Assembly (NCBI RefSeq): GCF_031769215.1
Contig: NW_026782141.1
Location: 186,001-250,000 of the forward strand
From: Ylistrum balloti
Lineage: Eukaryota
Direction: 5' to 3'
Length of the DNA stretch: 64,000 bases
The notes under the pieces were generated by a model. That model was not told the DNA's origin. It did no database searches and saw only the letters and a list, made by a program, of their open reading frames with translations. Positions 15,234 to 48,100 of the stretch are shown in pieces. Numbering within the stretch: position 1 is the stretch's first letter; every line of letters starts with the position of its first letter. The position numbers and the translations under genes are program-made.

Positions 15234-15261
15234 GGGGGGGGGGGGGGGGGGGGGGGGGGGG
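15234..15261. repeat. poly-G tract (28 G)
   Basis: Directly visible. Confidence 0.9.
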
Positions 15262-17401: not shown

Positions 17402-17661
17402 TCGAAGGAGAATGACCCTTATCTGGATGAACCTATTACAGAGCGTGAGGTAAGAAATATTTGTTGCAAATTAAATTTAAATAAAGCAGGATGGAACGAT
17501 TGTACGGTTTATGAGCATTTTAAATATGGAAATAGCTCGCTATATAGCCATCTGTGTAAACTGTAAAATTCTGTTATCAAAATTCAGTTGATTGGAAGAA
17601 GGGTGTTATAATAACTTTGTATAAGGGCAACGGTAAACCGAAGGAAGATCCAAACAGTTAT

Positions 17662-17707
<46 letters not shown>

Positions 17708-25104: not shown

Positions 25105-28100
25105 TCACTGCTGATCTGGTTTTGGTCGTATACGTCCTGCTACAATCTTTCCATAGCCTCCTCGTCCTTCATCAAAATCTGTTCTGTATTCATCTCGCAC
25201 CTGTCAAAAAATATACCCCAGTGAATAAATATGACATCTCAAACTTGATCTGACCTGAAGCATACAGCAATTCACCCTATTGGACCTATACAACAATGTC
25301 AAAAAATTGCACATGAGATATGACAATGGCTTGACCCAAGCATATTCCAGATCAAAACTTGCTGAATACGGATGATGTATTTTAATAGAATAAAAACTTT
25401 ATATACTATCAGTTATATATACTCAATGCCGACCCCCTCAGTCTCACAGCGGTAACATGTCCCCTGTTTAGAGTTGAGTTTACAGTAGACCCTCTCACCT
25501 ACCTGCCGTTCACTCTTTCCTCTTCCAAACTGTTGACCCTGTTACCTTCCTGTCCTCCATTCTTACCTTTACTATAATGTTGACCCTCTTATCTACCTGT
25601 CCTTCACTCTTTCCTCTTCTATAAAGTCAACCATCTGACCTACCTGTTCTCAATTCTTTCCTCTACCATACTGTTCCCTCTTACTTACCTGTTCTCAATT
25701 CTTTCCTCTACCATACTGTTCCCTCTTACTTACCTGTTCTCAATTCTTTCCTCTACAATACTGTTCCCTCTTACTTACCTGTTCTCAATTCTTTCCTCTA
25801 CCATACTGTTCCCTCTTACTTACCTGTCCTCCACTCTTTCCTCTTCCATACTGTCGACCCTCTTTGAAACCTGCATCCCAATCAGTTCTCACAATGCGGT
25901 CATCAAGCCGTGTTCCATTGATATACCTCAAAGCATTAGCAGCATCTTCACGCAAGTAATATCTTGTAGTTGGTTAAGGAATGCAATATGACAAACTATA
26001 AGAATGTATGCTCAAGACTTCTTTTCATAGTTTATTCAGAGGGTTGGAAGCAAATGATAACAAGCCATCGCATATGAAATTCTACATTGATGTAAGTGTA
26101 GAAAGGACATAGTCATTGGACCTACTGCCAAGGGAGCCCAGTCATGGTCATGATATCTCACAAAGTTTATTTAAAAGTATGTCTAGAATTAAAAGGCTGA
26201 AACTGAAGTGGAGATTGATGTGTTATTTATGAAGTTATTTGAAACTGCTGAGGAGAAAAAGGTTCCAGAAATAATGGAATCAATTAATTTGATTCCAATG
26301 TAACAAAGAATTGTCAAAAGTGAAAACTCCTCTACAGCAAAAGGAAATACAAGACCACTTGAATATGTAAGAATTTTAGTGGAATCATTTGTAAGAGTAA
26401 ATGCTCTGGAGATGCTTTAATCAATGATTCTGATTATTTGTTATGTTGGTACCCAAAGAAATATTCAAACTAGGAACCCTTTCATGCTGAAACCAGTAAT
26501 TTGGATTATTTGTTTCAATAGTAACCATCAAAATGCTGAAACTGAAATTTCCTTTACAGCAAAATAGCAAACAGCACTAATAAACTACTTAAGTGATATG
26601 CGGAGAAAGTCTGGTGAGATTATCTTGAACACTTTTCAAGATATGCTCTGAAAAATCCCTAGGAGGGACAAAGAGTCAAATGAAACCCATCTGTACAATA
26701 ATCTTTGTTGGTTGTGGGATAGTATAGATGTTTTGGTTGTGAAGTTTCATCAAAATTTCATAAAGAATGAATCCAATAGAGTTCTGACAAGGATGGTCTT
26801 AAAAAATGTGACGGTGGCTTTTACCTTGACGCTACAACCCTTGAACTCCTGAAATTTGAATTTGTACAAAATTCTATAGTCATTTATAAGTGTGAGATGT
26901 TTGATCATACCTCAACCCACCCTTAGAATGAAGTCGCTATAGCACTGACAATGATAAAAGTTATGTTACATACAGGAACATTCTAGGACACAAGCTCTTA
27001 CAAAACAACATTGAGTTTCCTATGTCTTTCAATCTCATCATATATTATCCAAATTGTTCAAGTCTTGACATTCAGGCTTGGTGAGATTACAAATTTTAAA
27101 TTACAGGAATTACTTATTCTGGCTTATCTTTCACATATTGCATGTAAGCAAAAACTTGGGCATTATTTCTTGTGACCAAAACACCTAAACTGATCTGTGG
27201 ATAGAATTTCAAGGCACAAAAATGAAAATTTAAGATATCCTGTTCAGAACCAGTTCAAATCTTTGACAATATAAACAATATAGTGAGTATATATGTTAAA
27301 AGGTTACTCTAAAAAGCAGAATCCACATGGAGTTTTCTGAACTTTATCAAGACCCATAATTATCCTCTTGACATCTCCACATTTAGAGAAAAGTTCATGT
27401 ATCTGTTCCTCTGTTGTATAAAATGAAAGATTGCCAACATAAAGTGTGGAGCTCTGCAACAGTAGTCTCTCCTGCTCTACTCGATTTCCCTGAAATTTAA
27501 AACAAGTATAATTTTTCAGTATTAGTAATGGCTAACAACCCCCTCCTCTCCCCTAATCCCTATTCACAAATGAGGTAATGGCTAAAACCCCCTCTCATTA
27601 CTAAAAGATCCATATAGTTGGTCTTCAGAATTTGAGTAAAATCGCAGGAACACCACGAGTTCAGGACTAATATCAGAGTCCTCCAAATCAATTTCTTAAG
27701 TGGTAAAGTAAAGGTATGTGTATTGATCCATGGATAGCAGTAAAGAGTCTTTCTATTCATAAGATAATGGCAGAGTTTTCTTGAACATGATGTATCATTA
27801 AGTACTTTAGATAACTATGAGCTAAAAAATCGCATGTGAATGATATTTTTATCATAACTGAATTAAAATTTACTTCTCAAGACTAAGCGTAAGACACCAT
27901 ATAAAATCATCAAATACAGACCTCCACTAGAGTTGATTAAAATAATTAAAAATGAAAATAGGTCATTCATGATAAATGATTGGTATATTTCATGTTACCT
28001 TTATTTCAGCAGAATCAAATAACAGCTACCTCAGTACCGGTATTTCAGGTGGGGTGGATCAATGATCACTGCTGATTTAGTTATTGTTTTAGGCAGACCT

Positions 28101-28395
28101 AACTCTGGTATTGCCAAACTTCGTATAATTTGATGAAATATATGACCCATTAGGCTAGTCCGGGGTACAATTCCTTCCCTATTGTTAAGCATGCATGTTG
28201 ATGTCTCATTGCCGGTGAATGGCTTATGCGTCAAAACTGGTGATGCCACTTGTTTCATTTTGTTCACAATTACCCAATAAATTCAATTGCCATTCCTAAG
28301 GACTTCGAAACAAAGAGACATGAATATCACATATTTACCTTGAAGTGTTGATCTCTGTAGGAGCTTATAGCGGCAGAGCCTGACGGTAAAGACAT
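25105..28395 (-). CDS. NCBP2: Nuclear cap-binding protein subunit 2 (CBP20), 157 aa, 4 coding exons
   Basis: join(28339-28395, 27308-27489, 25824-25962, 25105-25200): [19 protein letters not shown]|[61 protein letters not shown]|[46 protein letters not shown]|[18 protein letters not shown]...*. Unmistakable CBP20 RRM. Confidence 0.98.
25490..25860 (-). repeat. 45-bp tandem array of NCBP2 exon-3 end + 5' splice site, in intron 3
   Basis: Exon end AGTATGGAAGAGGAAAGAGTGGAGGACAG|GTAAGT; unit AGTATGGTAGAGGAAAGAATTGAGAACAG|GTAAGTAAGAGGGAAC. Three extra CAG|GTAAGT sites at 45-bp spacing plus four more degenerate donor copies. Confidence 0.95.
25963..27307 (-). other. U12-type (minor spliceosome) GT-AG intron 2 of NCBP2
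   Basis: 5' end GTAACCTTTT (consensus GTATCCTTT). Perfect U12 branch site TTCCTTAAC (25973-25981) 10 nt before an AAG acceptor; no polypyrimidine tract. Confidence 0.85.
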
Positions 28396-28640
28396 CTTTG
28401 ATGTCATTTTGTTTTCAGGCTCCCTTTGACTCTCACGAATCGGCAAACTCGGTCCTCACCCGGATGCTTGCATCGCCACCTAGTGGCAAGACCCTGAAAA
28501 CCAGTCGTAGGCGAAGTGTTGCATTATTTGTGAGACATGGGGAAATGTCAAGTACGTAAACTTTCGATGTCAAAATGTAAAAATTGTGAAAATGGTGAGA
28601 CGGGGAAACATTATCATATGAAGCATTAACAAGTGAGTAT
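28396..28640. promoter_or_regulatory. Probable bidirectional promoter NCBP2/PIGZ with a CTCF-like motif
   Basis: Divergent genes and a GC-richer patch. CGCCACCTAGTGGC at 28474-28487. Plus-strand donor-like sites at ~28550 and ~28633 suggest PIGZ 5' UTR exon(s). TSS not observable. Confidence 0.55.
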
Positions 28641-31130
28641 TAATCAGAAAACTGTTTTCGTACTTTACTTTCCCAAAATTTGAGATTGAAATTGGTGGTA
28701 GATCCAGACACAGGATCCAGAACTCTTACGTTATCTGCGATAAAAAAAATAGGCGATGAGAGTGACACGGTACATTTTGAAAGATTTGGCCCAATTCGAT
28801 ATTTATAAACAAAATGATAATGTTATAATGTTAATGAATACGGGAAATAATTGTCTTTGTCTTTGGTTGCACGATTGGAAAAAGTTTCAAAAAATCTTGT
28901 GATGGTTTTGCAGGTGTGACTCACCAGCTTCGAACCATCAATGACGTCACTAGCAGACGAATCTTTGGTCGGTTGTTTCTACAGCATCCTATCAGTAGGC
29001 CAGACAACTTGTCTAGCTGCAATGATATGTGACAATCATGTAAATATTCAATGTAAATGTTAAATAATTTGCTATCAGAGATTGCACACACTCTACAAAT
29101 AAACAGCAGGTATTGTCATCTTAAAGACAATGAAAAGGCCTCTTTGGCCTGTCTTAAGACTATATGTGATTTGTAGTTATAGTTTATTAGCGAAAATTTG
29201 TACCTTTGTAAAAGCCTAATTCATAATAGGCCTGTGAATATATGACTTTATTGAGCATATTTTGTGGCCACATAAAATGTTTAATGAATATGACTTTTAT
29301 TTTCACTAGAAGAATTTTAAAATGTGAGAATAATTCGAAATGTGAAATTGTACATCAGAATGAGTTAATATGTGATAGGTTGCCCAAGAAGTTTTTTTTT
29401 CTTCAAAATGAACATTTAAACTCATTTTAAAAATCCTAAATGCATTTGTGTAACTGTATTTATAGATTAAGTAATACATTTTGGTTGGTGACCTTTTGAT
29501 TTTAACACTATAGATAAATTACTGCTGGTGCAATGCCAATCAAAACTTTTGATGGTACAGTGTTGATCAGTTAATTGGTATTATTGCTAACTGACAGCAC
29601 CTGAATTTGAAGTTTATTAGTTTATTTCCTGGTCCATGACTGGCGAACACAAACTCCAATGCCAGATCCCTGTACACATTAAATGATGGGGCATCCTGTT
29701 TAATACTCATCACTGATTGACTTCTGAGCTGATGTTTGCTGACGTGATGTACACATCCCTATTCCATGTTTAAGTAACTGATTATTTGCTTTTGATTTAG
29801 AAACCAAGTGGATATTAAGTTAGAGGTCTATGAAAATTTTTGGGGAATAATCATTAATCTACGTTCATTTCAGAATATAAAACTTCTTGATTCTAATGAA
29901 ATAACAGCTTCTGAGCGAGATATTGTGCAGCGACACAAATTTTCAATTATGTATGTATTAAGAGCAAAAATTTTGGCTACCCGTTCAAGTTCTCCTTTCA
30001 CAGGGTAGTTGATTCATTCTGATCTTTAAGGGTTACTTTCCTTAATTCCACATGATCAACACTGATGGTAAAGTGTTAAGCTTGACAACTCTAGGGGCCA
30101 AGAATGAGGCAACCTCATTTACTTGTACATGTGAACATTCACTTGTGATATTAAAAACTATAGTGTGTACAGTCTACTCCCATACACATTTTCTTTGTAT
30201 ATTTCATTACTTTATGATAGAAAAGATAATACTGTGACTGTTAGGTCCACTTGTTGTAGCAAGAATGTAAACCTCTTAGAAAATGTGTTCTTTTTCAAAA
30301 ACAACAACTTACAGATATTTTGAATTTAACACAATATGTTGTGATATATGAATGTTGTCTGTATAGGCCCCTTTTCCATCATTGTTGTATTTTTCTGTCA
30401 AGTTCACCTTTTAGAAAAGTGCATGATTACACATATCTGTCCTCTTAGTCATGTGGCCCTGGCTGTTGCATTGACTTTAGGCCCCAGGACAACAAAACAA
30501 AGCAGATTTACATGAGAATCAGTAGAGTACAAGCATGATGGACCAGTCTCTTCATATACAATACTCTTTATGCTAAACAATCAATTGGTCCATTTTTTGT
30601 TTAAAGGTTTGATAAGTTGGACCAGAGTTGTCTTTTATGATGTAAAAGCGAACATACTGATATACTTTTGTCTACTGATGAGCTTCAGCTAAACCTTTCA
30701 AGGCCTGTATTGATATTTTCAGGTCTGTCTGAATTTATGCCTGAAATGTTACAATTTAAAGTGTTGACAAAACAATATGTCTGCAGCAAATTGATGAAAC
30801 TGATGTCATAACTCTAGACCAAATGTAATCATTGCAATGCAATGCAAAATTGTACACTGTAGAGGTATAGGAGTCAAATCAAACACTTCAGATTCTCACC
30901 TGAGGTTGAATTATTTTATGCTTTACTGACTGTTATGGTCCCCAGTTTGGTTTGTAACATGAGTGGTTATGCTATTTACATCTCTTTTTTTATAGACCTG
31001 TCAGTCTCTAGTGTTATCAGAGTATGTTTGTTTAGAGCTAGTGCTTGATAACACAAAAGTTTCATATTGTTTTGTTTGTTTCAGATACACAATGCTATTT
31101 TATGGTGCATTGTATTAGGACTGCTACAAG

Positions 31131-33796
31131 ATGAGGAAATGGTATGCTGCACTGTGGTTGGTGCGAGTAGTGTTGGTGCTATTGCCACAAACTGCCTACA
31201 TCCATCCTGATGAGTTCTTCCAAACAGTGGAGGTTGTGGCAGGTAAAATTGTTCAATTACTGTTGTGAGACTGGAAAGCTCTTAATATATAGTTTGCCAA
31301 AAAGAAAAAAATGGCCTTGACTGAAAAAGCATTGATCAAATGTAAATCAGTTAAAACAATATAAATTTGAAAAGAAAGGAAGCATTTTTTTCCAGTCCAT
31401 GTGCATCTTTGATGGAGAAAAACACAAATACCTCCCAAAACAATAACAACAAAATAATATCTATTGAACACATAGATGAAAGTTTTAGCAGCAAATGTTG
31501 TAATTATTTAAACCTAAGAGAAGTATTCCTACTTGTGAGATCAAGAGAATATTTCAGCCTTGGAGAAAGGAAGGTGCACTAATCATTGTGCCACGAAGAG
31601 CCTCCCCTCCCCAAGATAAACATCATGTCGTGTATTACAAACAAGTATTCATGCCATTTACCTTTCTACATGCTGCTTAACACATAAAGTTGGAAAAGCA
31701 TTTTTGATATATGAATTCTTGCCAAATTTTCTTTCAAATTTTTTGTTTTTCATATTTTCAATGTTTGGTGAAACAGGGGACATATGATAATTGTATTATA
31801 CTTTCATAGTCAACCTTTTAAGTCTTAATACAAAATGTCTTGCAAGAAATTGAAGCACCTTGTGAATTGTTTAGCATGTGACCATTTGACATGCAAGACC
31901 TGATTTGGTAATGTATTGTACAACACCTGCACCTACATCTGTACAAATGTTAAGGCACCCTTTCTAAATCCTGTGTGGATAAGTTGATGTAATTCTAATT
32001 TTTTTTTTAAATTTCTTTAAATTTTACACAATGACTATTAAATGATTCAATACTCCAACGTGATGAAAATCTCATTAGCATAATATTTTTCAGGTGACAT
32101 CCTGGGCTTGGATACCTACACTCCATGGGAGTTCAACTCCACGTCTCCAATACGTAGCGTAACTCTGCCGTTTACAATCCTGGGACCACCACTTCTCCTT
32201 TTCAACTTCTTCACACATCATTTCCCTATACTTGAGACATCTTACCTCATCCTCGTGCTGCCACGCTTAGTCATGGTCCTCCTAACTGTTGTTTTGGACC
32301 TTTCAGTGTATTACATGTGCCAGTGTCTCAACCTGAACGAGTGGATGGGTCTTATGTTAGTGTCATCAAGCTACGTAACGTTGACTTACTTGACAAGGAC
32401 ATTCACAAACAGTTTTGAGACCACGTTTCTTTCACTATTATTAGTAGTGTTAATAAGAGAGTGGAAATCAACAAGAAGTTCAACAATTCTGAATTTTAAA
32501 GTACTGAGTACAGATGTCAAAGATAAAAAATCAAAGAAGAAATTTAAGCCAAAAAAGAAAATCAAAAGTACGTTTATTGCTGAAATTCCTAGATATAGGC
32601 CTTATGAATGCATAACTAGTAATTTTCTCCCCTTGTCAGCTTTTCTTGTTGGGATGATTGTTGTGGCAGGTATGTTTAATCGCCCAACTTTTCTAATATT
32701 TTGTAGCATGCCAATCTTTTTCTGGATTTTATCTTATTATACCAAGACAAACAAATTCAATTCCATTATGACCATTGTGATATTTTCTGGTCTCGGTTTC
32801 CTGTTATCGTTTGTTATTTTTGTGTTTGTAGATTCTGTGTACTTTAATCCTCAAATATTATCAACTGTTAAAAGTGATTTTGAAAATTGTCAATCTTCGC
32901 GAAAAGACTATGTCATGTGCTTGAAAGACACAATCACAAAATATGTCATTGTTACTCCTTGGAACTTTATAAGGTATAATACAAAACGTGATAACTTGGC
33001 GCAGCATGGCATACACCCGTGGTATGTTCATCTACTGGTCAACATGCCGTTACTGTTTGGACCAATGTGTGTTGTGATGTATTACTATATTGTTAAGTTT
33101 GTATTGGACTTGTACAAAAAGACATGGAAGAGTCACAACCTGGCTTTGATATTCAGTAATTTTATGCCATTGATTCTTCTGTCATATTTTCCTCATCAAG
33201 AGCCGAGATTTCTCATTCCATTATTACCTACTATGACGCTGATCACATTGAAAATTGTTAGTTCTGTGAACCACAAATCATTTCTTTGTACATGGATTGT
33301 ATTCAATCTATTGTTGACTTTATTGTTTGGATTTCTTCATCAGGGAAGTTTGACTTCATGTATTCAATATTTTCAGCATAATCTCCATTCCAAGTGCAAA
33401 ACAAAAGAATCATCTAAACACTGTTTTACTCATAAAGATAAATTCATATTTTATCATACATACATGCCTCCACGATATTTGTTTTTAGATGAAAATGCAA
33501 ACAAGCAAATAGTTGATTTACAAGGACAGAACTGGACTAGTCTTAGCAATCATAAGCCCAAAACAGTGAAACACCAAGTGTATGTGATATTACCAGGGTC
33601 TCTTATACAGGAGGCAAAACATCATTTAAAATTTGACATTGTTACTCAATTTTCATTGCATTTAACAATGGAGGACCCACCAGATCTATCGCTGTTGTTT
33701 CATTTATACGAAGACTTTACGTGTCATAACTTTTATAAAATATGGACAGAATTATCATCACAGATGTCATTATTTATAATTAAAATAAAAAGGTAA
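31131..33796 (+). CDS. PIGZ: GPI mannosyltransferase 4 (SMP3/PIG-Z, glycosyltransferase family 22), 604 aa, 2 coding exons
   Basis: join(31131-31242, 32094-33796): [51 protein letters not shown]..., with later [41 protein letters not shown] and HQG motifs. Confidence 0.96.
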
Positions 33797-36198
33797 TATT
33801 TTGGTTTTGCTTTATTTTTTGCTTACTTCCTCAAAATAAATTGGTTGAATAAGTATGCCTATATTAGTTCAGAATGGCTGAAGGAATTTTTAACTGATGC
33901 AAGTACACAGAATATATATAAATGGAAAGTGTAGTCCTACATGGGATGAAGTAATGGCAATTTGTACCTCCACCAACCTTACAATCTTATTGTTTGTGTA
34001 GACTAAATATAATTGAAACAGAGGAGGCCTGGTTTAGATATTAGTCAAGTGAACAAGGGATGGAGTAGCAAGACCAAGCAAGGAAAAAGTGTTTGTTTGA
34101 AGTTTGTGTTCATGTACCAGCTAAGGTAACAAAACAAGTGATAAGGCTTGAGTGTGTTTTGAAAAAGTCATTTCATGAAATATCATATATATATAAATAA
34201 CATGATACCCCACCAACTCACATTGTGATGACAGTTGCTAATCTCATTATCAACTGCCAATCAAGCAGAGAGCCATACATGCAATTCTTGGAAGATTATG
34301 GTTTTGTCCTGGTTAGTGAGGCCCAAGTCTACATCCTTCACTTGTACTTTATTGTCAAGTAAGGCATAAGGAAAAGAGAAATTAAGAAAAAAAGCGAGAA
34401 ATATCTTATAATTCAATCCATTAGAACAGCAGATATTGTTCTTGAGCCCTATCTATAGGAACTTAATTTCACATTCACAATGGGAATTCAAGTTGTTGGT
34501 GTAGCCATCTTTGCTAAATGGGGAAAAACTAATGACAGGATAATTTTATCTTTCGCAATGTGCATTGCGCCCTACCTGAAAGGGAATGTAATGCAATGTA
34601 AGAAAGATTGGGATGTTTGACTAATATGGTATTGGAGATGAAAAATCTATGACAAGGGGAATTTTATCTTTTATTAATGGAGTGAATTAGAGGAAGTGTT
34701 TTTATTGGTTAGAAGGGTTGTCATGATCTGGTTTAACAATACACTACCATAGTGAAGATATAAGACTTGCAGTCACTTGTCATTGTCTCACTTTTGACCT
34801 CTGAGTTAATTATCGCCCATGTGAGGAAAGCTATAGGTCTTGTCTATAAACCATGCCATACATAAATGGTGTCACAGAGTGATACTTCATTCTCAGCACT
34901 AAATCAGATCCACAAGGAAATAACTGCCCATGTTGATGTCGGTATGATGGAGAAGGGATGTTAAACTATCATGTCCAAGTCCAGCAGTTGTGAAGGGATA
35001 AAGCCGGACGAAACAAAGATACCACAGAATAATCTTATCTCGTAATGGTGGGCCAAAACATACTTCCAACTTTTCAAAATTCTCACTCGGGAAGAAGTAT
35101 CTAAATGACATTTTTGAATCAACATGATATGTTGCACATCTCAACATGAATGTCGCAAAGGAAAGATCTAAAGGACATTTGGTTGATATATTTAGGTAAG
35201 GTTAAGTTAATAACTTCATTATATGCATGTTTTACTATAACATAATAAAAGTCGCTGTTTTATTACAAGTCAGGACAAGATGGGATTTAAAAGATAATGT
35301 GAATCCTCTTTGAAATAAAATTTAATTAATTTTTCAGTACTCTATGAATTCGTACAATATAACACATAGCAAGATTTACGATTATTTGTTTAGTTGTTGG
35401 TATTGATATTTTTTTATTTCCAAATACAGTGTTTAAAAAAAAAATTAAATTCAAATATGAAAAAATATTGATTATCTCATGAAAATTTAAGCTACTATTG
35501 AAGTACAACCTATAGAAAAAAAAATAAAAAACATCAATGTACGGTAAATTTCTGAGTTCATTAAATTGTTTAAAAAAAATTCCAATATGAATAAGTAGGA
35601 TTGATAATTCAATGATCTTTCATCATTATTTAAAGATAAGAGACATTTTATAATTAGTGTGTTTAGAAACAAATTAAGAGATGACAAGAACATATTCTCA
35701 AGGATTGTCCAACAGAATAGTTTATTATCACTAATTTCTCATTACTTCGTAGTCCGCAATATCTTTCTTAATCACAAGAAATTTGCATATAGGTTGCTGA
35801 AGGTAAAAATGAGTACTTTTCATGTTTGCAATCTGCATCATCCTTACTCTTGTTATTTATAAGAAGTCGCTTCAAAATCCTGTTGACAGGCTACTTACAA
35901 ATATTTTGAAGTCATTTGGCACACATGACCTAGCCTAATATCTTGACCCTGGATCTTGCAATAACTGAGAAGCAGTTGCTTAAAGGAAATAGCCAATGGT
36001 TAATAACCTACTGAACAGCTTTCTCACACTTTCGGCAAGTCAGCTAATAACTATACAAGAAGTCTTGGGTTAAAATGCTTTCACACATTTTATTTAAAAT
36101 ACATATACATTTTGCATTTTCAAATGTCATATCCAATTATCCATATGCTTTTGAACTCCAGGTCTAGGTGTTACAATGGTTTTGTACAAGAGATATTA

Positions 36199-39100
36199 TT
36201 ATTGATCCTTATCGTCTGTTGCTGTGTTCACAAAGGAGGACAACATCAACTCCAGCTCAGAATTCTCCTCTGCATCCTCCTGAAGTGATATAAATTGAAA
36301 TGACAAATCAATGTTTCAATAGTCAGGAAATCTTAATGATGTATTCATACATTTCAAAAGCATGCTGATTATTGGAATTGACCTTACCTAATGTTTTACA
36401 AACGACATCCTCTTACCTTTCACAACTGTCCTATCAACATTTTAAGCCAGAATGCCAAAACAAACATGAACTAGAGGGCTCTAACTCTTTTCGATATTTC
36501 AGCCAATGAGAAGGCCAGGATCGGTAAATTTTGTCTGAAAGGCCGTCACAATAGGCTATTACGTACTGAATACGTTTAGCCTTAAAATGAATTACCATCT
36601 GCCACATATATGTAATGTAGAAAAATTAGTGTTGAAGAAAGTTTTACAGTAGTTTTTAAGTTGGGGATGCGGAAAGGTTTAAATCTAAAGTATACTAAAT
36701 AACTAACTACAAAATTACGTGTTTACCTGATTCTCATTTAGTTCTTTCTCAGAGTCTTTTATAACCTCTCTGACTACAGTATCTTTGGTATCAACCTCCT
36801 GCTTTCTCCCTTTTCTATCACAGTGTTCTTCAAGGTCCTCAACAGCTTTAGCATCAAGGAGGTCTGGAGAAGACTCTGGGACTGCAGCGCAGTCAGTAGC
36901 ACTAGTGCACTCTGTGACCACTGTGTCCTCCTCATCTACCTCACCACCAGTGTGTTCTGTGACTCCTGGGTCCCTGCCATCCACCATCACAGAAGTGTCA
37001 ACACTAACCTCCATTTCTGTGTGTGACTCACTTTCTGATGAATCCTCATCCTCTTCCATCAGCTCTAAGTCTTGTTGAACTATGTGACCTTGTTGAGATG
37101 TAGATGCTTCCATGTCATCATTGTATCTACTAATGGCTGCAGTAACTTCATTTGTTTTACTTTCGTTTTGAACATGTGATGACATATCATCATTTTTGGT
37201 CCTTGAAAATATTCTTTTCCCAGCCTCTCCGATTTCAAAGTCACTGCTGTTTTCTGAATGACTAAAAAGTGATCTCCGTTTATGTGATGATGTGAAATTT
37301 TGGGAATCAGATTGCTGCTGTATGAAATTTGAAGACTTTTCAATGTCATGATGACCATTAAGGTCCTTATTTGTGTCCACTGTTTGATCTGTCTGACTGT
37401 CCTTACTGCCTCCCACAGTTAACACTTGAGTAACCACCACTGGGGCTTTAATACAAGGTGCACGAGGATGAATCAGTGCCTCTAGAGTTCTTTGTGCCTC
37501 CAAACAAATCTTGTTAACCTAAAACAGAAAACAAAATGTGCTTCTGTGAAATCATTCATCTCCGTGAAAGGAGTGAGGGGGTTAATCATAACCAACCAAT
37601 TCATACGTCCAATAACTGTTGAAGTTAATATAAGCAGATTTGTTGAGCTATACTTATCAAGTCTTCACAAAATAGCATTTTTTTTGAAAGACCACAAAAA
37701 CTGACTCCCAAAATATATCTGATTTTACAGCATTATCATGACCGAGGTAATTAGATGTTCTCAGATGTTTTATCATCAGTAACCCTGTTTGACAATTTTA
37801 AGATACAATTTATTTCCCTGCTTATTACATGAATATTTTCTGATTGTTGTTTCTATCACATATACTTGAAAGACAGTATCCACTTCAATTACAAATGTAC
37901 ACGATTGTGCTGACACTTTGGACTGCTGCAGTATGGAATATCATTAACAAAACCAAAAGTGTTTAAACTTGAAAGGTATTCAGGAAGATTTTCAATCATC
38001 TGCAATTTGTTGTCATCAGCTAAAGACACATTCTGAACAGTACATCAGTAAAATCCTGTCTATGCAGCATTCCCATCAAGGTAGAAAATGATGTAGCTAT
38101 TTAATCTTTAACAGGTGTAGGAATATACTGTACTTACCTTAAAGGACTGGTCATGAAGCCCCATCCTGAAGATCCCTAAGGAACAGTGGAGCGGTGAGGG
38201 TGTCGAGGGATGAGGCACTAGACAACAGGCCAGCAGTACCCTTAGTATCTGGTATCTACAACATGGGTCTCTGTAAGGAATCTCTGAGTTCTTCCTCTGT
38301 TGGAACATTGCAAGGCATGTCGAAATAGCAAACTCCTGTACATTCTACAAAACAATACATTTTATGATTAAGAAGCAAAAAATGTGTTTTTACTAAAGGT
38401 TGCTAATTAAAAGTTTCAATATAGAAATGTTACCAAGACAACTAACAAATCTTGAAAAAAACACTTGAGTATTATTTGTTACATTTTTCTCAGATGTCTT
38501 ACCTTTTGTATCTACTTGACATCTTACCTGTAAGTTTATAAAACTAATCTATAATCATACCAGAGGATTTTGGAGTGATATTTGAGAACCTACCTGTGGT
38601 ATTTTGTGTAATATCTAAGAACTTAACTGTGGTATTTTGTGTAATATCTAAGAACTTACCTGTGGTATTTTGTGTAATATCTAAGAATTTACCTGTGGTA
38701 TTTTGTGTAATATCTAAGAACTTACCTGTGGTATTTTGTGTAATATCTAAGAACTTACCTGTGGTATTTTGTGTAATATCTAAGAATTTACCTGTGGTAT
38801 TTTGTGTAATATCTAAGAACTTACCTGTGGTATTTTGTGTAATATCTAAGAACCTACCTGTGGTATTTTGTGTAATATCTAAGAACTTACCTGTGGTATT
38901 TTGTGTAATATCTAAGAATTTACCTGTGGTATTATGTGTAATATCTAAGAACCTACCTGTGGTATTTTGTGTAATATCTAAGAATTTACCTGTGGTATTT
39001 TGTGTAATATCTAAGAACCTACCTGTGGTATTTTGTGTAATATCTAAGAATTTACCTGTGGTATTTTGTGTAATATCTAAGAACCTACCTGTGGTATTTT

Positions 39101-42100
39101 GTGTAATATCTAAGATTTTACCTGTGGTATTTTATGTGATATTTGTGACTTACCTGTAAAGGTTTTGGACATCCAAGATCTTTTGGTCATATAATATATA
39201 AGATCACCTGTAATATATTTTGGACACAGTCTCACTGTATTTTATTTCAGACATGAGATCTTACCTGTAATATTTTCTGTGACATTTGAGATCCAATTGC
39301 TGTGAGCCACCAGTAAAGGGCTGTAAATAAAAGGGATGCAATCTTATTCAGTATTTTTGCGGCAATGGAATACTAAATGGTCTAGATTAATTAGGACAGG
39401 AGTCACAGGACTAAAAAAGAGTTTATACACCTAATATTAGATAACTTTTACTGAAATTCAGGCCTACTGGGGGGTGGGCTGAACGTGAGTAATAACAATT
39501 AAAAATATCACAGAAGAAACATTTATATTCATTGTGATCCAATGCTTAAAATTCCTAGAAAACAGCATGATCAACAGCAATAGTCATTTAGAGGCAGACA
39601 CAATCTACCCAAACACCTTGGATCTTCACAAAAGGTCCCAAAGTCTAATATCTAATGACTGAGCTACCATGGCCCAAACACATATTATTATAACCACTGT
39701 ATGGACGGGATAGGTAGAGAACATTTACCCTCTAATGCTGCTGACACCAGATCTGCCCCTGCCAACCTGTCAATCTTCCTCAGGGAGCTAATACCCTGTG
39801 ATATTTCCTGGTAACCTGTCTTCTTTTTCTTGCGAGGAGGCGGTTGAGGATCAGACTTACTGGTACTATCTCCTGCACCACTAGAAAGCTGACAACACAA
39901 GTTATCACAAAGTCATTTCCTTATTCTCATCATCAATATTTCTTCAGCAGCTGTTATACAAGTCATTCATGTTGGTATGGATTAGAATTATAAAACAAAT
40001 CAAGAGTAATTATCATATCTGTAAAAAGATATCAATGAAACAAACTGATAAGTTATTTGAAAACAGCCAAGTTTGTAAACCCTTTGAGAATTGTACCAGT
40101 CTTTGATTTCGATTCAATGATCACATGAGAAGTTAGTTGATAAAATGTAAAACAACACAGTAAATAACAAACAAATGAAGTGTTGATCCAGTCATGATTT
40201 AAAGACATCATTTGAAAACATTCATGCAGGTAGATCATGTTATATTTTACTTACAAAAACATGGATAGACCTAAATTAAGTTCCATATTTAAATAATTTA
40301 TGTCATGAAGCAACACTACTCTCAGCACGCAAACTCAAGAATCATTATTTCATTCAAACTTGAAAGTACAGCACTTTTATTGAATCCCTGACAGTGCCAC
40401 AGTAAAATCTTTTTTAATATCCATAATTTTTCTCAAAATGTGTAAAGCTGACTTCATGGATACATATAACTCAATCAATAGGCTTATTCTAATTTTATCA
40501 GTTATAGTGAATGTTGATTTAGTTGATTCAGAGTACCCACAATATAAATAAAAATAAAACACCCACAAAAACTAATGATTTCACAGTATACAGTTCACCA
40601 CCATACTTACCATGTACAGTACTTATACACTGTAACTATCAATAGACTTGACAGTTGTAAGCAATTCTAATGAGACTGCAGTAGATATGGGTGGGCTTAT
40701 TACCAGGCATACTCCCATATAATTACTGTACCTTGAATGTATCAAGTTGCATTCCAGCATCATGAAGTATCTCCTCACATAAGGCTGAGTCTTCAGTGGA
40801 TGTCTCTACGAAGGTAACTGTCATTTGGAACCATAGTGTCAGACAGTTGTATACACTCTTCCTCAGTTCACTGTTGTTAAATTATAAATATCATGATGTA
40901 AACTATGATCATTGTCAGCTATCTTTATATAATACAGAATATATTTACAGAATAATACACAAAACATCACATTTACATTAGGATCATCATCATGGACAGT
41001 CAGTAAATACAAAGAAATTTGTGTGATTTATCATCAGTTCATCCTCAATACTTCAGGGTTACCATCACTATCACTCTCCGCATCCCTTGAAATTTTATTA
41101 TAGCAAAAACAGTCTGTAGTTTGGTGTGATGTGATATGTGTAGGGTGGGTTCTGTCAGTAGTTAGGTTTGGTGTGTTACCTGTAGGGTGGGGTCTATCAG
41201 TAGTTAGGTGTGGTGTGTTACCTGTAGGGTGGGGTCTATCAGTAGTTAGGTGTGGTGTGTTACCTGTAGGGTGGGGTCTATCAGTAGTTAGGTGTGGTGT
41301 GTTACCTGTAGGGTTGGGTCTATCAGTAGTTAGGTGTGGTGTGTTACCTGTAGGATGGGGTCTATCAGTAGTTAGGTGTGGTGTGTTACCTGTAGGGTGG
41401 GGTCTATCAGTAGTTAGGTGTGGGGTCTGACCGTAGTTTGTTTTGGTGTGTTACCTGTTGGGTGGAGTCCTTAGTAAAGTGTGTTACCTGTAGGGGCGCG
41501 CCTGCCCGTAGTTTGGAGTGGAATGACTCCAGACTAGTTCTTGTACCAGCAGAGTCAGTACCAACTTGGTGTGAGGCAGAAGGTGAAGTTTACAGCTACA
41601 AAATAGATAAATCATGTAAAATCGGACACCATAACATCAGTATGGTATGCTATAGGTAAATCTGGGAATTCATTAATATACTCTAGCAGAAACAAATAGC
41701 CCAGCTCACCTGGATATTTCAGTCATCAAGACAAAATCTCTCATTTGCATAGCATGAATATTTCTAATTTCTACCACACTAAGTTCCACAAAAAGACCAA
41801 TATAATTTCATTTTCTGGTGAAATAGAAGTTTCAATGCAAAATAAGTGAAATAAAAACAACAAAATTTTCACTTGTTGTTCCCATTGGCTAGCCAAACAT
41901 TTATACAAGTTCAACAATGAGCTTTACTCATTTATTAGTTCTACAGATGACTGTGTAATGGTCATAACCTTGACCTAAAAATGAATAAGCCATTGGCATG
42001 CACAGACTCTTGTAACTGTGCACTGACACACCAAAACCAGTTCATGAGTAATGTAACAAAACACCTACAACAGATCAGGGAAAAAGATCACACTGTGTTG

Positions 42101-45100
42101 TTCAGAGAAATCAGTTCATATATGTGTATCAATATAGAACTTCCTAACAGAATATGGCTATTATCAATAATTACCATTTGATGAGGTTGTAGAGGAGAGA
42201 GATGGCTAATCTGTGTATAGATGGTATAAATCCAGCTAATAAAAGTCGCTCTGTAGAAGGTCTAGCTACCTGAAAGGAGAAACGTTACACTGTTTATTAT
42301 CACAAGAAAAGCTGACTTCTGGTAGAAAATCCAAACGGTCATTACTCTCCAAAAATTGTAAAATAAAAATACTATTCAGTGAAAACAAAATAAGCATCTG
42401 GACAGGACTACGTGGGGACAAACCTTCATTAGACCTAAATACTCACCTGCATTTTACAGTTAACAGACAGGATCCTACAGACGAGGTTCAGAACTATGTG
42501 GGGACAAATCTTCATTAGACCTAAATACTCACCTGCATTTTACAGTTAACAGACAGGATCCTACAGACGAGGTTCAGAACTATGTGGGGACAAATCTTCA
42601 TTAGACCTAAATACTCACCTGCATTTTACAGTTAACAGACAGGATCCTACAGACGAGGTTCAGAACTATGTGGGGACAAAACCTTCATTAGACCTAAATA
42701 CTCATCTGCATTTTACAGTTAACAGACAGGATCCTACAGACGAGTTTCAGAACTATGTGGGGACAAATCTTCATTAGACCTAAATACTCATCTGCATTTT
42801 ACAGTTAACAGACAGGATCCTACAGACGAGGTTCAGAACTATGTGGGGACAAAACCTTCATTAGACCTAAATACTCATCTGCATTTTACAGTTAACAGAC
42901 AGGATCCTACAGACGAGGTTCAGAACTATGTGGGGACAAATCTTCATTAGACCTAAATACTCATCTGCATTTTACAGTTAACAGACAGGATCCTACAGAC
43001 GAGGTTCAGAACTACATGGGACAAAACCTTCATTAGACCTAAATACTCATCTGCATTTTACAGTTAACAGACAGGATCCTACAGACGAGGTTCAGAACTA
43101 TGTGGGGACAAACCTTCATTAGACCTAAATACTCACCTGCATTTTACAGTTAACAGACAGGATCCTACAGACAAGGTTCAGAACTATGTGGGACAAAACC
43201 TTCACTAGACCGAAATACTCACCTGCATTTTACAGTTAACAGACAGGATCCTACAGACGAGGTTCAGAACTATGTGGGAACAAAACCTTCATTAGACCGA
43301 AATACTCACCTGCATTTTACAGTTAACAGACAGAATCCTACAAACAAGGTTCAGGACTGTGTGGGACGTAACATTCAGCAGTGCCAAATACTAACCAGCA
43401 TTTTACAGTTAACAGACAGGATCCTACAGACAAGGTTCAGGACTGTGTGGGACATAACCTTCAGCAGTGCTAAATACTCACCAGCATTTTACAGTTAACA
43501 GACAGGATCCTACAGACAAGGTTCAGGACTGCCTGGGCGGGAATTTTCACAAGAGCTTGGAAACTCTCACTGTAAACAATAATATTTACATAGCAAGGAC
43601 TCCACATAAACCAAACAGAAGTAATTGTAAACTGAAGAAAAGTAAATAATATCCATCACATTTCCATTATGACAAATATAGCAACAGTATTGTCAAAATT
43701 ATTGTAAGTTGTGTCTACATGAACAGGCTGCTGATAATTAATGAAATGTGCAATATTTTAGTTGTAAGATATGAATAAGACGAAATGTGTAGGAAACAAA
43801 AATACATATATAACTGCTTTGCTGTCAATTTTTGTTGATGAATAACACAATTGTATAAGGATTCAACATAACGCTTGCCTGCAAAGCTGGATCATTAATT
43901 TGGCAATGAATGGTTGAGTGTCACTCACAAACAGAATAGAATAACAGATTAGTAAACACATCATGTAGTAAATTTTTAAAATATTTTATATTACAGATCA
44001 AAATATCCGAGTTCAAATCCAAAAATTAACAGAGTTTTGTCGAAACTAACTGAAATGAATACCATTCCATGTATTATCTCCATAACAAATACTACTGGTG
44101 TTAGAAAATTAGGCCTTTAAGTTAAACAAAAGTCATAAGAACTTAATAAAAAAGAATCAACCCAGGTGAACTTTAACACAGGTAAAGCAAAGTTATTTTG
44201 GCAAACAATCTTGTGATTTATTCCAGAAAGCTACCAAATGAATTTTCTGACCTTGCCATGTCAAGACAGAAACACAGCATTATGGAAACAATTGTACATC
44301 TCATCTGTCCTGTTTTGCTAGTTTGAAAATAGTCAAATTGATATCACATGTATTTCTCCTCAAAAAAAATCTTCAAATTTCCAGGTACACGTTAAATAAT
44401 AACTGCATAACAGTACCAAAAATATGCCCACAGAAAAATAACACCACATTCTCACTTCTGTTGCAGGTGAGACAAAGATGTTATGCTCACAAAAATGAGA
44501 AACATATTTTTAAAAAAAAAATTACTTCTTTATATAAAATGTCAAAATCTAAAGAAATACCTGAGTAAGGCCTGCAGGCAGCCAGAGTAGGCGTGGCACC
44601 TGGACATAAGGGCATGGTACCTTTGAGGGTATGATGTGGGCAAATCCTCCAGGGGTATGACCCTTGTTCCATCCTCCCCAGTGACAGGTGACATGACTGT
44701 AGGATAAAGAGTACCAAAATGAAGTATTTGGACAATGTTCTTAAAAATCAAGGCCATGATGACAAATGTCATTAATAGCACAGATCACAAGTCAATCAAG
44801 TTAAATGTCACTGATGGCAGAGGTCAAAGGTCACTGGTCATTACATGTTACACATCAGGTTTCCTAAGCATTTTTTTTTTGGAAGTTATTTATTTTGTTA
44901 GAAATGCATGAAATTGGGACTGGATGACTCTAGTACAATAAGTGATTTCCTTCAGTTCAACCTAATTCATTAGAACTTGAACTTGCATGCTGGAAGCATG
45001 AAAAAGATTGTTTGTTTTATTAGCACACTGTATAGCTAATAATATTCATGTGCAATATTTGTTTCATAAAATTTAGCACAAAATCAAATACAAACATTTT

Positions 45101-48100
45101 TACAACGAATCAAAATTGTTTCACATGCCTGTATACATTGATACAAATTGACAGATATGTGCAAAAATTAATTGTCTTGAACTAGCTCACACTGGGATAA
45201 CCATGAAATATCATGTTTTGATGGAGCAGCTTGATTACAGTAATAGTTGATGATAAAACATGTCCTGTGTGATATATACAAGGTGAAAAAGTTTAAGGGT
45301 AGCTTTAATTGAATGCATTTCTCAAAATATGATAATATTCTATATTTAATACTGCATAATTGAAACTGAGAATTTATACTGGATGTACCAAATAATGCTT
45401 TATTTTACAAAATGTTTTTGATTTCTGTTGGTGCACTCAGGTATTGCTATGCGTAGTTTTTCTGATGGTTTCGTTACTGTATTCATTGTGCAATAAACCC
45501 TAATGACAAGTGTGAAATACCATACTTATAGAAGATATTTGTGTTCACAGATTGGTGGCAATCCTACTGAAACTGCAATAGATTTGGATGGGCTTAACAC
45601 CAGACATGGGCTTATTGTAGATATGGTTACTGTAACACATACCACAATTTGTGCAGTTACTAAAGATTTAGAATATTATGTTAGTATTAATATCTCTAGT
45701 CATACCTGTGTCAAGCCCTTCATACAAGTGGTCAAACAATCTGTGTAAACTGTTGACCACTCGGTTAAACTGTACACTCCAGCCCTCTGTGTGCTTCAGG
45801 CCCATGTTTCCTCCACCTCCACACCGACTCAGCAGAGCGAAGCACCGCATCACTTCCTATTGATAACAGGTACATAATGTCATCATTTAATTAACACTTG
45901 GTGTGTACTACTAGATACCCACAGTAGACCACTCAGTTTACTTTGAACTTTTCTATTGAATGAAGTTTATATGAATAGAAATTATGTATAAGTAAGTGTA
46001 AACATCTTGTTCTTTTCTCTGAGACATAAAACTTGACAACACTTTCGTAATAAAAACATCTGGTTTGCCTAGGTGTGTATAAAAAGGAGTTTAAAAGAGT
46101 AACATGAAATGAAAACTGAAAAAATGTGATATTTCTGTTGACTGTGTATACAACTACAGAAAAAAAACTGCTTACCTTTGATACAACATCACAAGAGAGT
46201 TCCTTCACCACATATGAATCAATCTTGCCCTAGAAAAGCAATCATGATATATAATATCAAAAGGATTTCATTTCAAGAATTTTCATTTCTATAATTATTT
46301 ACTCAATATTATTTATACATAAAGATGATTAATGCATGGATCCTTATAATGACAATTTCCAAACAGAAGCTTAGACCTTCCCAGTGTGATAGGCCTTAAC
46401 ACATTGGTCACTGTAAATCACTTAAATTTAGGGAATACTTCATTTCATAAGCTTACCACTTCAGGCATATTCAGTCATATTTAGTACACAGACCTAGCTA
46501 GTTTATCTTGAACATAGCACAAGAACAGATAATACACTCTGACTGTAGCACAGGAACCTGGGTAATTTACTTAAGAAGTAGTGCTGGAACCTAAGTTAAA
46601 TACCTTGAATGCAGCACAGGGACCAGGATAGTTTGATATACAGCTGTTGATACAGAGGCATGCTTCATTTCTCCACTGTAATACAGAAAAGGTTTTCATA
46701 AATAGATATATCTAGTCAACAGATATGAAAATCTTTTCCCAAGCACACAGATATGACTTACATAGTAGATCAATAAGGTTTCTTGTGCGTGACAACTCAT
46801 ATGGTATGAAATATTGCACTTGATGACCTTCAGAACCAGAAGTGAAAGTTATTATAATATGCTGATCATATAGATAAAAAACAAGCATGTTGGCGATACA
46901 GACACAAACCCTTGTATATCATGACACTAGAACTGATGCTGTTATGTAATAATTATTTGTGTTATTTGAGACCTACATTTATCCTATTGCTATGAGCAGT
47001 TTCAGAAGACCTGCTTTGACTGGTGGTGGTATTGTTACGTCATTGATGTTCATTTGTTTATAGATAATTGGAAATTTTCACTGGAAATCCCAACCCTTGT
47101 GATTAGATTCTTGAAAGTCAAGCTTTTGGCAGAGCCTCGGGTTTAACATTCAAGACTGAAGACTTCTAAAATCTTTTACTTTTTGTTTACTATCACAGTT
47201 GATTAACTTGATAATTCAATATCAAAAATAAATCCAAGGAAAAGACAATATTGCTCATAATAAATTACTTTAAAAAGCAAAAGGATATGTGATTCATTAA
47301 CATCAGAAATCTGAAGTAGTTAAAATATTTAATATCTTTACTTAATAGTCACTTCTTATCTTGTACACAAAATGTTTCTCCCATTCTTAATATTTAATTC
47401 AGCTGAAACCAGTTCTGAATTCAGGTATCATACAACTTATTACCTCTGTTGGAGCCGAGAGCAGGGCAGAGATGATCTGTGGCACAAGGGAGGTAACCTC
47501 CCGACTCAAGGATGTGAAGTCACTGACAATGCCCAGAATTCTGCTACAAACGTAACATGCCAGACGCTGTGTGCTTGGAGGATCATGTGACTACAAAGTA
47601 AAACCTCAAGATTAGTGTTAAACAATAATCACTTTCATTTTTTTACAATCGTGATCAGATGGGAGTTTTTTTTTTTTTTTGCTTTACATTTCAAGAGATC
47701 AAGGGAATGACTCAGATATTTGTTTTAATCTCTACGAAAACATTCTTTTCTGTATTACCTTATATGGCAAAGTTTCCATATGCATATACAAGTACACGTA
47801 CCTAGAAAATTATGAAAATTATACATTGCACTAAATAAAAAGCAAATTCTGCAGCTGACAGACTTTTCTGTAAAACTTCCAAATTCACTAGGTACATGAA
47901 AATTCTGCCAACACACAACATAACATTTTAGGGTAGTGGCACTCACCTGGAAAATCTGAATCATGAAACGAATCCATGTGAGTGTATTGTGTGTGAATAC
48001 CTCTGTTACACATTGTTCAAGTACTTTGTCGAGGAACACCAAACCTTCTACCCTAAAAGTGAAACAAGTAGAAATTACAAAATAAGGAAAATTTGGCATT

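Follow-up and report, generated by a model that had tools for sequence, protein, structure and literature searches.

The window, a stretch of 64,000 nucleotides from the scallop Ylistrum balloti, carries on its minus strand four tandem arrays (units of 45, 33, 42 and 86-87 bp) and one decayed 33-bp relic that copy exon-intron junctions, distributed over intron 3 of NCBP2 and introns 5, 9, 11 and 14 of PELP1, both housekeeping genes. In all five, the unit is made up of the tail of the upstream exon, its 5' splice site and the head of the intron. Repeats derived from junctions in this way are of an already known kind and not a new class, but in this scallop they are uncommonly frequent and concentrated at donors, and some of the arrays are old. 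The arrays are probably minisatellites of the type called mirages in amphioxus, that is, tolerated junction duplications in which the first donor is spliced and the copies are homogenised by unequal exchange. They are best read as side products of a very active turnover of minisatellites in the introns of bivalves, and not as dedicated regulatory devices. The exons concerned and their repeats are as follows.

25824 to 25962, minus strand: NCBP2 (CBP20) exon 3, last base at 25824, donor GT at 25823-25822
25490 to 25854, minus strand: NCBP2 intron-3 array of 45-bp units (TRF and junction-query alignment)
46604 to 46675, minus strand: PELP1 exon 5 (72 nt), donor AAG/GTATTT (exon model; same length in four scallops)
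46480 to 46603, minus strand: decayed echo of the exon-5 junction in PELP1 intron 5, about 33 bp (alignment and shuffle test)
43482 to 43569, minus strand: PELP1 exon 9 (88 nt), donor CTG/GTGAGT (exon model)
42403 to 43530, minus strand: PELP1 intron-9 array of 86-87-bp units (TRF and junction-query alignment)
41488 to 41595, minus strand: PELP1 exon 11 (108 nt), donor CAG/GTAACA (exon model)
41116 to 41487, minus strand: PELP1 intron-11 array of 42-bp units (TRF and junction-query alignment)
39265 to 39320, minus strand: PELP1 exon 14 (56 nt), donor CAG/GTAAGA (exon model)
38514 to 39264, minus strand: PELP1 intron-14 array of 33-bp units (TRF and junction-query alignment)

The junction origin of the units was examined with 70-nt queries (45 nt of exon tail and 25 nt of intron head), each aligned with the remainder of its own intron, and 200 dinucleotide shuffles served as the null. 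The queries gave 7, 9, 6 and 12 matches for the arrays of 45-, 33-, 42- and 86-bp units, respectively, all of them spanning the junction, and the best scores were 96, 42, 41 and 125 against shuffle maxima of 33, 27, 28 and 28. The intron-5 relic gave a weak signal in Ylistrum alone (score 32, with 28 the highest in the null; p ~0.001). Its homologue was detected in Pecten and Mizuhopecten (p<=0.001), where TRF called the Mizuhopecten copy as 33 bp x2.1, and marginally in Argopecten (p=0.047). The first-pass annotation had proposed that four arrays and a decayed fifth copy an exon end with its GT donor in sense orientation, and scores far above those of shuffled controls bear this out. Its statement that the arrays are unrelated to each other also held, the donor motif ACAGGTA being the only sequence common to the units of different arrays. 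Since the units match their own exon tail and share only this motif, an origin from transposon-derived satellites (the bivalve 145-158-bp repeats with ACGG/CGTC microsatellite flanks) was rejected. True satellites of the transposon type are present separately in Pecten and Argopecten introns. Antisense controls with donor and acceptor junctions gave no match in 63 scallop introns each; since inverted copies are not a product of tandem duplication, this control is weak.

Three further candidates were set aside. The 27-bp repeat at 52345-52423, with CCAGGTAAG motifs on the minus strand, codes for protein (DLPGN...) where an ORF of the plus strand begins (52332-53195), and is therefore no donor echo. 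The 38-bp array at 57634-57765 belongs to an intron of a WD40 gene on the plus strand; an exon follows about 60 nt further downstream, and by eye the array is unrelated to the junction. A relic of the intron-11 unit that had been spotted by eye in Argopecten failed the shuffle test (p=0.68).

TRF called the four arrays at 25514-25854 (45 bp x7.4), 38578-39157 (33 bp x17.6), 41116-41423 (42 bp x7.3) and 42403-43530 (86 bp x13.1), as head-to-tail tandems of 7-18 copies with 85-95% matches, and each unit carries CAG/GTRAGT or CAG/GTAACA on the minus strand. The array continues directly from the junction in NCBP2 intron 3 and PELP1 intron 9, and via one to three decayed units in introns 11 and 14. 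In NCBP2 intron 3, where a unit comprises about 31 nt of exon tail and 14 nt of intron head, the real junction forms unit 1, and the 7 echo copies after it become more decayed towards 25490. The PELP1 intron-9 array begins within exon 9, with about 50 nt of exon tail and 37 nt of intron in each unit, and has 12 echo copies, 5 of which show GT>AT as one block. One or two decayed proximal units precede 7 homogeneous units, all with CAG/GTAACA, in intron 11. The intron-14 array starts with decayed units (39158-39264), continues with 17-18 homogeneous ones (38578-39157) and ends in a decayed tail to about 38514. Every decoy GT has been lost from the intron-5 relic.

The authentic donor appears to be the first copy in each array, because exon lengths are the same as in the relatives and NCBP2 exon 3 ends in GGQ, as human CBP20 does. 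The translation of this exon aligns with human CBP20 residues 91-133, with GGQ ending at human residue 133; the exon is conserved in Argopecten and Mizuhopecten, and the one after it begins with VRDEYR at about 25199. Each of the three scallop PELP1 genes modelled in full has 17 coding exons, and use of the first donor gave exactly the annotated Pecten, Mizuhopecten and Argopecten proteins. In Ylistrum, PELP1 exons 2-15 agree exactly in length with the exons that yield these proteins, and exons 1-15 (2-15 in Ylistrum) are of equal length in the four scallops except for a 3-nt difference in Mizuhopecten exon 13. Over the array-bearing exon 15/16 junction of Argopecten, the transcript-derived proteins P0154 and P0155 run collinear with P0153. 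For Ylistrum itself, exon-length conservation makes first-donor use probable. An in-frame stop follows 1-12 codons past the true donor in the array introns, and use of any decoy in Ylistrum would lead to a premature stop. Such early stops had been pointed out in the first-pass annotation, but they are no signal, being usual in any intron here (median distance of 6 codons over all 15 Ylistrum PELP1 introns).

Comparison over related bivalves, which had been proposed as a check, separated shared arrays from private ones. Several genera of scallops have homologous arrays or relics in PELP1 introns 5, 11 and 14, which evolve in concert; those of introns 11 and 14 are still active in three genera. 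The intron-11 array has the same period and register in Pecten and Mizuhopecten, with unit counts of 7 in Ylistrum, about 31 in Pecten, about 40 in Mizuhopecten and 0 in Argopecten, where it was not found. The homologous 33-bp array of intron 14 is present in Pecten (x7.8) and Mizuhopecten (x11.9) and as a relic in Argopecten (p=0.006). The NCBP2 intron-3 and PELP1 intron-9 arrays were seen only in Ylistrum; the former was not found in the orthologous intron of Argopecten (L002) or Mizuhopecten (L004), and the latter had no counterpart in Pecten, Mizuhopecten or Argopecten. Unit identity was 0.77-0.96 within species against 0.62-0.79 between species. Intron-11 units of Pecten and Mizuhopecten were nearest to the junction of their own species, as were the intron-14 units of Mizuhopecten, whereas those of Pecten were equally near the Mizuhopecten junction. 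In Ylistrum intron 11, the units retain CCTAAC where the exon now reads CCAAAC. In a PELP1 protein tree of the four scallops, with a partial Ylistrum sequence, only Pecten plus Argopecten was supported, and we therefore make no claim of loss as against repeated gain for intron 11.

How often arrays fall on donors was determined by rebuilding PELP1 in eight bivalves and calling arrays by TRF against verified donors and acceptors; gene models of Mya, Ostrea, Sinanodonta and Tegillarca were incomplete, and only 43 exactly verified introns were used. Fourteen arrays spanned a donor, against 1.66 expected under uniform placement (about 8-fold), and none of 200,000 simulations reached 14. When Ylistrum and the arrays common to it and its relatives were left out, 8 remained against 1.42 (Poisson tail ~1e-4). 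The contention that random minisatellite birth cannot explain the placement at donors thus stands for these eight genes. The excess over intron interiors is a measured one, so something favours birth, survival or fixation of arrays at donors. The TRF census found one acceptor-spanning array in the eight genes, without any acceptor excess; the deficit at acceptors relative to donors is expected from selection, because a duplicated upstream acceptor would be used first. The acceptor array of the oyster Ostrea is 31 bp x ~28; the ark clam Tegillarca has an acceptor duplicate and Argopecten an array spanning the stop codon. Analogous arrays were also found in Argopecten, Ostrea, Sinanodonta and Tegillarca. 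Unit lengths were not consistently multiples of three (also 32, 36, 86-88, 49 and 52 bp), and intron-internal arrays of all kinds were abundant (20 in Ostrea, 41 in Sinanodonta).

The cause of this bias may be a mutational process aimed at exon-donor junctions, which would make duplications mainly there and leave selection to remove only the harmful ones. Candidates are polymerase pausing or U1-bound nascent RNA leading to replication-transcription conflicts, R-loop-linked breaks, or a greater proneness of exon-like sequence to duplication. We hold such a process tentatively, as possible but rather unlikely; it is compatible with classification of the arrays as mirages, since it concerns only the cause of the bias. 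The 8-fold excess and its persistence without the ascertained species agree with it, as do further arrays that begin 7-60 nt past a donor (Argopecten intron 7, Pecten introns 7 and 15, and Tegillarca). However, the donor lies anywhere in the unit, with an exonic share read off as ~0.02-0.8, and there is therefore no fixed break point. Acceptor-spanning and stop-spanning arrays occur too, and the count comes from one gene family sampled across species and picked because the window had been flagged.

Selected clusters of U1 snRNP sites, which would aid recognition of the upstream exon, block premature cleavage and polyadenylation, or act through NMD-coupled decoy tuning, are an improbable explanation. 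The decoys are mostly intact, with GT in ~96% of units (~134/140). In the large arrays of Pecten and Mizuhopecten, the donor 9-mer varied least (5.0% of cells mismatched, against 9.1% over the whole unit, in units that are not independent), and the Pecten intron-11 array had no mismatch in 279 donor cells. The intact GT and the low variability of the 9-mer would also fit selection on decoys and, like the persistence of the intron-11 and intron-14 arrays in three genera, count against the mirage-type reading; this persistence and the premature stop predicted from every decoy likewise agree with U1 clusters. However, in our own count of variable sites the donor (23/90) did not differ significantly from the remainder of the unit (118/334), and the Ylistrum intron-14 array showed the reverse trend, with variation concentrated in the donor (8.5% against 1.5%). 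GT has been lost in relics and in the block of five intron-9 units, and early stops are usual for all introns. Arrays are not present wherever the host intron is conserved: orthologous introns work array-free (intron 11 in Argopecten, NCBP2 intron 3 in Argopecten and Mizuhopecten, intron 9 outside Ylistrum). Arrays of the acceptor and stop-codon types, with the same architecture, cannot act through U1. Given the absences from sister genera, the GT-less relics, and the acceptor or stop arrays of Ostrea, Tegillarca and Argopecten, we do not favour the earlier suggestion of U1 landing arrays kept by selection.

An assembly artefact, through mis-joining or over-expansion of repeats in a single draft genome, is a very improbable source, for although the NCBP2 intron-3 and PELP1 intron-9 arrays were seen in one assembly only and a mis-assembled mirage has been reported in an amphioxus draft genome (PMC3087553), the independently assembled genomes of Pecten maximus and Mizuhopecten yessoensis have homologous arrays in the same introns, analogous ones occur in Argopecten, Ostrea, Sinanodonta and Tegillarca, and the units show the graded divergence and decayed flanks of real arrays.

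Mirage-type turnover, the reading that we prefer, would proceed in four steps. A short tandem duplication of 32-114 bp, arising by slippage, unequal exchange or staggered-break repair, would by chance span a donor. It would be harmless because the spliceosome keeps the upstream-most donor in use, so that the copies remain intronic, and rare use of a decoy would lead to a premature stop. Unequal exchange and gene conversion would then enlarge and homogenise the array, at times including the first unit that overlaps the exon. Finally, arrays would end by collapse or by decay into GT-less relics. The appearance and disappearance of arrays between genera supports such turnover. More speculatively, exon-donor junctions could be intrinsic hot spots of minisatellite birth or lasting survival in bivalves, and perhaps also in amphioxus and other marine invertebrates of high polymorphism, through mutation coupled to splice sites or transcription or through selection of U1 arrays, with exchange between array and exon tail feeding back on protein evolution; we consider this conceivable but doubtful.

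These results give a first quantitative indication that donors carry such arrays at about 8 times random placement, with acceptors showing no excess. They go beyond published single-gene cases in that some junction arrays have lasted through several scallop genera, where they evolve in concert and trade sequence with the coding tail of the exon, and in that such arrays occur in bivalve orders distant from each other. Should a census of whole genomes bear the bias out, these genomes would hold hundreds of natural tests of how a 5' splice site is chosen among identical copies, and would help to tell whether local structural mutation is influenced by splicing or transcription. In practice, junction arrays are a trap for gene prediction and read mapping at exon ends.

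The first-pass annotation knew of no named description of such repeats as a genome-wide class, but several descriptions of this kind of repeat precede it. Our search of the literature for a bivalve or genome-wide description found none, which is not proof of absence. Intronic U1 sites that hold back premature polyadenylation (telescripting) and decoy 5' splice sites resemble the arrays in placing multiple consensus 5' splice sites in one intron; these, however, form a functional class recognised by experiment, whereas the scallop arrays are patchily conserved and have acceptor and stop siblings. In the Rogers model of intron gain by tandem duplication of AG/GT (tested in PMC3265369), the duplicated segment likewise holds a splice junction motif and its copies can be spliced out. 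We rejected intron gain for the scallops, where no new intron has arisen: the arrays lie within pre-existing, shared introns, and intron positions and exon lengths are conserved in four species.

Donor-spanning repeats are known in human F7 IVS7 (37 bp), IFI6/6-16 intron 2, CBS IVS13, LMNB2 and PDGFA intron 4 (PMC1557585). As in scallops, the exon-intron boundary lies within the first monomer, so that identical pseudo-donors come after the authentic donor. F7 is spliced at the upstream-most of its identical donors only, and its pseudo-sites can work once the first site carries a mutation, while IFI6 and CBS use the first one or two pseudo-sites (PMC1557585). Unlike the scallop arrays, these are sporadic single loci. 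A close match is found in amphioxus, where minisatellites at exon-intron boundaries are called mirages, a term that these papers credit to Canestro et al. 2002, and occur in Adh3, RDH, troponin C, the globins BflGb6/9 and PGBD5, leaving splicing undisturbed (PMC3087553, PMC3902484). In both systems, minisatellite-like tandem duplications have a unit of tens to ~160 bp that holds the exon-intron boundary, many copies keep AG/GT, and arrays evolve in concert while their edges escape homogenisation. Copy number is unstable in mirages; in scallops, with one assembly for Ylistrum, it differs strongly between species. The mirages are those of a cephalochordate, reported one gene at a time and at both 5' and 3' boundaries, whereas in these molluscs donors dominate (14 to 1 in the TRF census). 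Unlike mirages, the scallop arrays include three junction duplications common to genera, of which two are active arrays and the third is a relic, and counts for one gene in eight bivalves show how far such arrays exceed random placement.

NCBP2 and PELP1, both on the minus strand, flank a GPI mannosyltransferase 4-like ORF in the window, and the same NCBP2-PIGZ-PELP1 order was found in Pecten maximus, Argopecten irradians and Mizuhopecten yessoensis. In alignment, exon 3 of NCBP2 (CBP20) matched human CBP20 residues 91-133, with GGQ at its end, and exon 2 corresponded to an RRM; PELP1 was identified by its exon-15 peptide, 87% identical to Pecten maximus PELP1. Near the end of the intron before NCBP2 exon 3, about 10 nt 5' of the 3' splice site, the minus strand within 25963-25995 carries TTCCTTAAC, which resembles a U12-type branch site. 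Elsewhere in the window lie reverse-transcriptase fragments (15234-19088, with RVT_1 at 17711-17956), pure poly-G runs of 28 nt (15234-15261) and 43 nt (17663-17705), and broken pogo/Tigger-like transposase ORFs (49450-50510, minus strand; Pfam DDE_1, HTH_Tnp_Tc5), which precede PELP1 exon 2 and presumably belong to intron 1.

Features of the window (arrays detected by TRF)
25514-25854, minus strand: 45 bp array, NCBP2 intron 3
32108-33796, plus strand: PIGZ ORF of 562 aa, 100% identity to Ylistrum balloti GPI mannosyltransferase 4-like
38578-39157, minus strand: 33 bp array, PELP1 intron 14
41116-41423, minus strand: 42 bp array, PELP1 intron 11
42403-43530, minus strand: 86 bp array, PELP1 intron 9

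The anatomy of the arrays was directly apparent. In all four, the minus-strand unit consists of an exon tail, CAG|GT and an intron head, and its source is the exon directly upstream. A 70-nt junction query (45 nt of exon and 25 nt of intron) was aligned to the remainder of its own intron, with shuffles as the null. It yielded 7, 9, 6 and 12 matches, all of which cross the junction, and the top scores were 96, 42, 41 and 125, where the shuffles reached at most 33, 27, 28 and 28, respectively. The first-pass annotation was correct that each array copies the upstream exon end and its donor in sense, and that the units are unrelated to each other, the sole sequence common to the four being ACAGGTA. 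Its fifth, decayed array, 3' of PELP1 exon 5, was marginal in Ylistrum by itself (score 32, shuffle maximum 28) and gained support from its recurrence at the same position in both Pecten and Mizuhopecten (p<=0.001), with a weaker signal in Argopecten (p=0.047). As a caution for motif-only scans, an acidic 287-aa ORF without Pfam match (52332-53195, plus strand) opens with a coding repeat of 27 bp (DLPGN...) that looks like consensus donors when read in antisense.

The real Ylistrum donor is probably the first of each array, as judged from exon lengths shared with three relatives. For Pecten, Mizuhopecten and Argopecten, PELP1 models of 17 exons reproduced the annotated proteins exactly, and when the first donor was taken, Ylistrum exons 2-15 equalled them in length (65, 106, 147, 72, 54, 151, 136, 88, 95, 108, 139, 160, 56 and 207). 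Transcript-derived proteins of Argopecten were collinear across one array-bearing junction. Every decoy donor in Ylistrum, if used, is predicted to lead to a premature stop. In-frame stops do follow soon after the true donors, as first proposed for the four clear arrays, at 12 codons for NCBP2 exon 3 and at 10, 3, 1 and 5 codons for the others; they are uninformative as a signal, however, because the median is 6 codons when the full set of 15 Ylistrum PELP1 introns is taken. The GT was kept in about 134 of 140 units. Mismatched cells made up 5.0% of donor 9-mers against 9.1% elsewhere, in units that are not independent of each other, and variable sites numbered 23 of 90 in donors against 118 of 334 elsewhere; Ylistrum intron 14 showed the reverse pattern, its donor being more variable than the rest of the unit.

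Turnover of the arrays was directly visible when 63 PELP1 introns of four scallops were scanned with junction queries. No acceptor-sense or antisense echo of a junction was detected in these introns.

Donor-sense echoes in scallop PELP1 introns, junction scan (copies in brackets)
Ylistrum, sense: introns 5 (1), 9 (12), 11 (6), 14 (9)
Pecten, sense: introns 6 (3), 11 (29), 14 (7)
Mizuhopecten, sense: introns 2 (6), 11 (29), 14 (6)
Argopecten, sense: intron 15 (4)

Ylistrum, Pecten and Mizuhopecten share the 42-bp period and register of the intron 11 arrays and the 33-bp period of those in intron 14. Argopecten retains a relic of the array in intron 14 (p=0.006), has no trace of the 42-bp array in intron 11, and carries in intron 7 a 57-bp array that begins 7 nt inside the intron. 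Among the four PELP1 genes the intron 9 array is confined to Ylistrum, and the NCBP2 intron 3 array is missing from Argopecten and Mizuhopecten, both of which were compared. Unit identity was 0.77-0.96 within species versus 0.62-0.79 between species. Intron 11 units of Pecten and of Mizuhopecten were closest to their own junction; for intron 14, the own junction was clearly best in Mizuhopecten only. Ylistrum intron 11 units carry CCTAAC, as do the Pecten and Mizuhopecten exons, the Ylistrum exon itself now reading CCAAAC. The sequence patterns at introns 11 and 14 fit a shared origin followed by concerted evolution, in which the units now and then exchange sequence with the coding tail of the exon. 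The scallops came out of a PELP1 tree with no resolved branching order.

Other repeats were noted in these genes. Mizuhopecten intron 1 (L004, 11083-12021) holds 27 copies of a 35-bp unit that belongs to the family of the exon-2 donor echo. This array precedes exon 2 by 0.9 kb and thus sits on the wrong side of the exon it was copied from; it may be left over from a larger duplication or reflect an error in the assembly. A 33/66/99-bp array in Pecten intron 15 (L003, 19474-21043), starting 27 nt past the donor, is open in frame with exon 15 over 537 codons, and its translation resembles the exon-16-encoded region (40% identity over 287 aa). The 145-158-bp satellites that recur in NCBP2, PIGZ and PELP1 introns of Pecten (L001, 2286-3520 and 17088-18466) and Argopecten (L002, 10417-11770), with ACGG/CGTC microsatellites on their flanks, probably stem from transposons; they have no relation to the junction arrays.

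The comparison was extended to 43 exactly verified PELP1 introns of other bivalves, namely Ostrea, Sinanodonta, Tegillarca and Mya. Ostrea edulis has donor echoes 3' of three exons (1, 2 and 14 copies), Sinanodonta woodiana a single donor array (52 bp x 7), and Tegillarca granosa two donor duplications along with one clear duplicate of an acceptor (score 98); Mya arenaria had no junction echo in its share of these introns. Ostrea also carries an acceptor-spanning 31-bp array of about 28 copies (L008, 14783-15788), whose unit joins the end of the intron, including AG, to the initial 10 nt of the exon. The array ends at the real acceptor and lines up a series of decoy 3' splice sites upstream of the site that is used according to the annotation. 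In Argopecten, a 22/44-bp array (L005, 18978-20090) starts within the final coding exon, and downstream of it the 13 C-terminal codons recur with their stop about ten times; it is analogous to the donor arrays but spans a stop codon. Ordinary minisatellites crowd the introns as well, with 20 intron-internal arrays in Ostrea and 41 in Sinanodonta.

The donor excess was counted directly, from TRF arrays with a period of 12-130 bp in PELP1 of eight bivalves, scored as spanning when they physically included a verified junction. Donors were spanned by 14 arrays and acceptors by 1, and 77 were intron-internal, against 1.66 expected per junction type, donor or acceptor, under uniform placement. None of 200,000 simulations gave 14 donor-spanning arrays (simulated maximum 10), in line with the initial argument that random minisatellite birth should not centre on donors. 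The count of 14 is conservative because Ylistrum introns 11 and 14 were scored as internal, since decayed units part the homogeneous block from the exon. When Ylistrum was left out as the ascertained case, together with any array that a relative shares with it, 8 were counted against 1.42 expected (Poisson tail ~1e-4, by hand arithmetic). This excess makes a donor-linked mutational or survival bias a live possibility; on the other side, no fixed break point was seen, because the donor falls anywhere in the unit (exonic share about 0.02-0.8, read off the array listings). A dedicated U1 function, put forward in the first-pass annotation as selected U1 landing arrays, is not favoured. Most likely, we infer, a duplication over a donor would be tolerated, splicing would take place at the first donor despite the copies, and the array would be homogenised by unequal exchange.

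The arrays are real minisatellites that derive from junctions, a kind already known and now documented in bivalves as well; our literature search found no report of such arrays in molluscs and no genome-wide census. In intron 7 of human F7, the first monomer of a 37-bp minisatellite crosses the exon-intron boundary and the upstream-most donor is the only one used; IFI6/6-16, CBS, LMNB2 and PDGFA are given as further human cases (PMC1557585), and in contrast to F7, decoy donors are used in IFI6 and CBS. The kind is also already named, whereas the first-pass annotation knew of no named description of it as a genome-wide class: minisatellite-like duplications of exon-intron boundaries in the amphioxus Adh3, RDH, TnC, globin and PGBD5 genes go by the name 'mirages', which is attributed to Canestro et al. 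2002. They affect 5' as well as 3' boundaries, show instability and concerted evolution, and leave splicing undisturbed (PMC3087553, PMC3902484).
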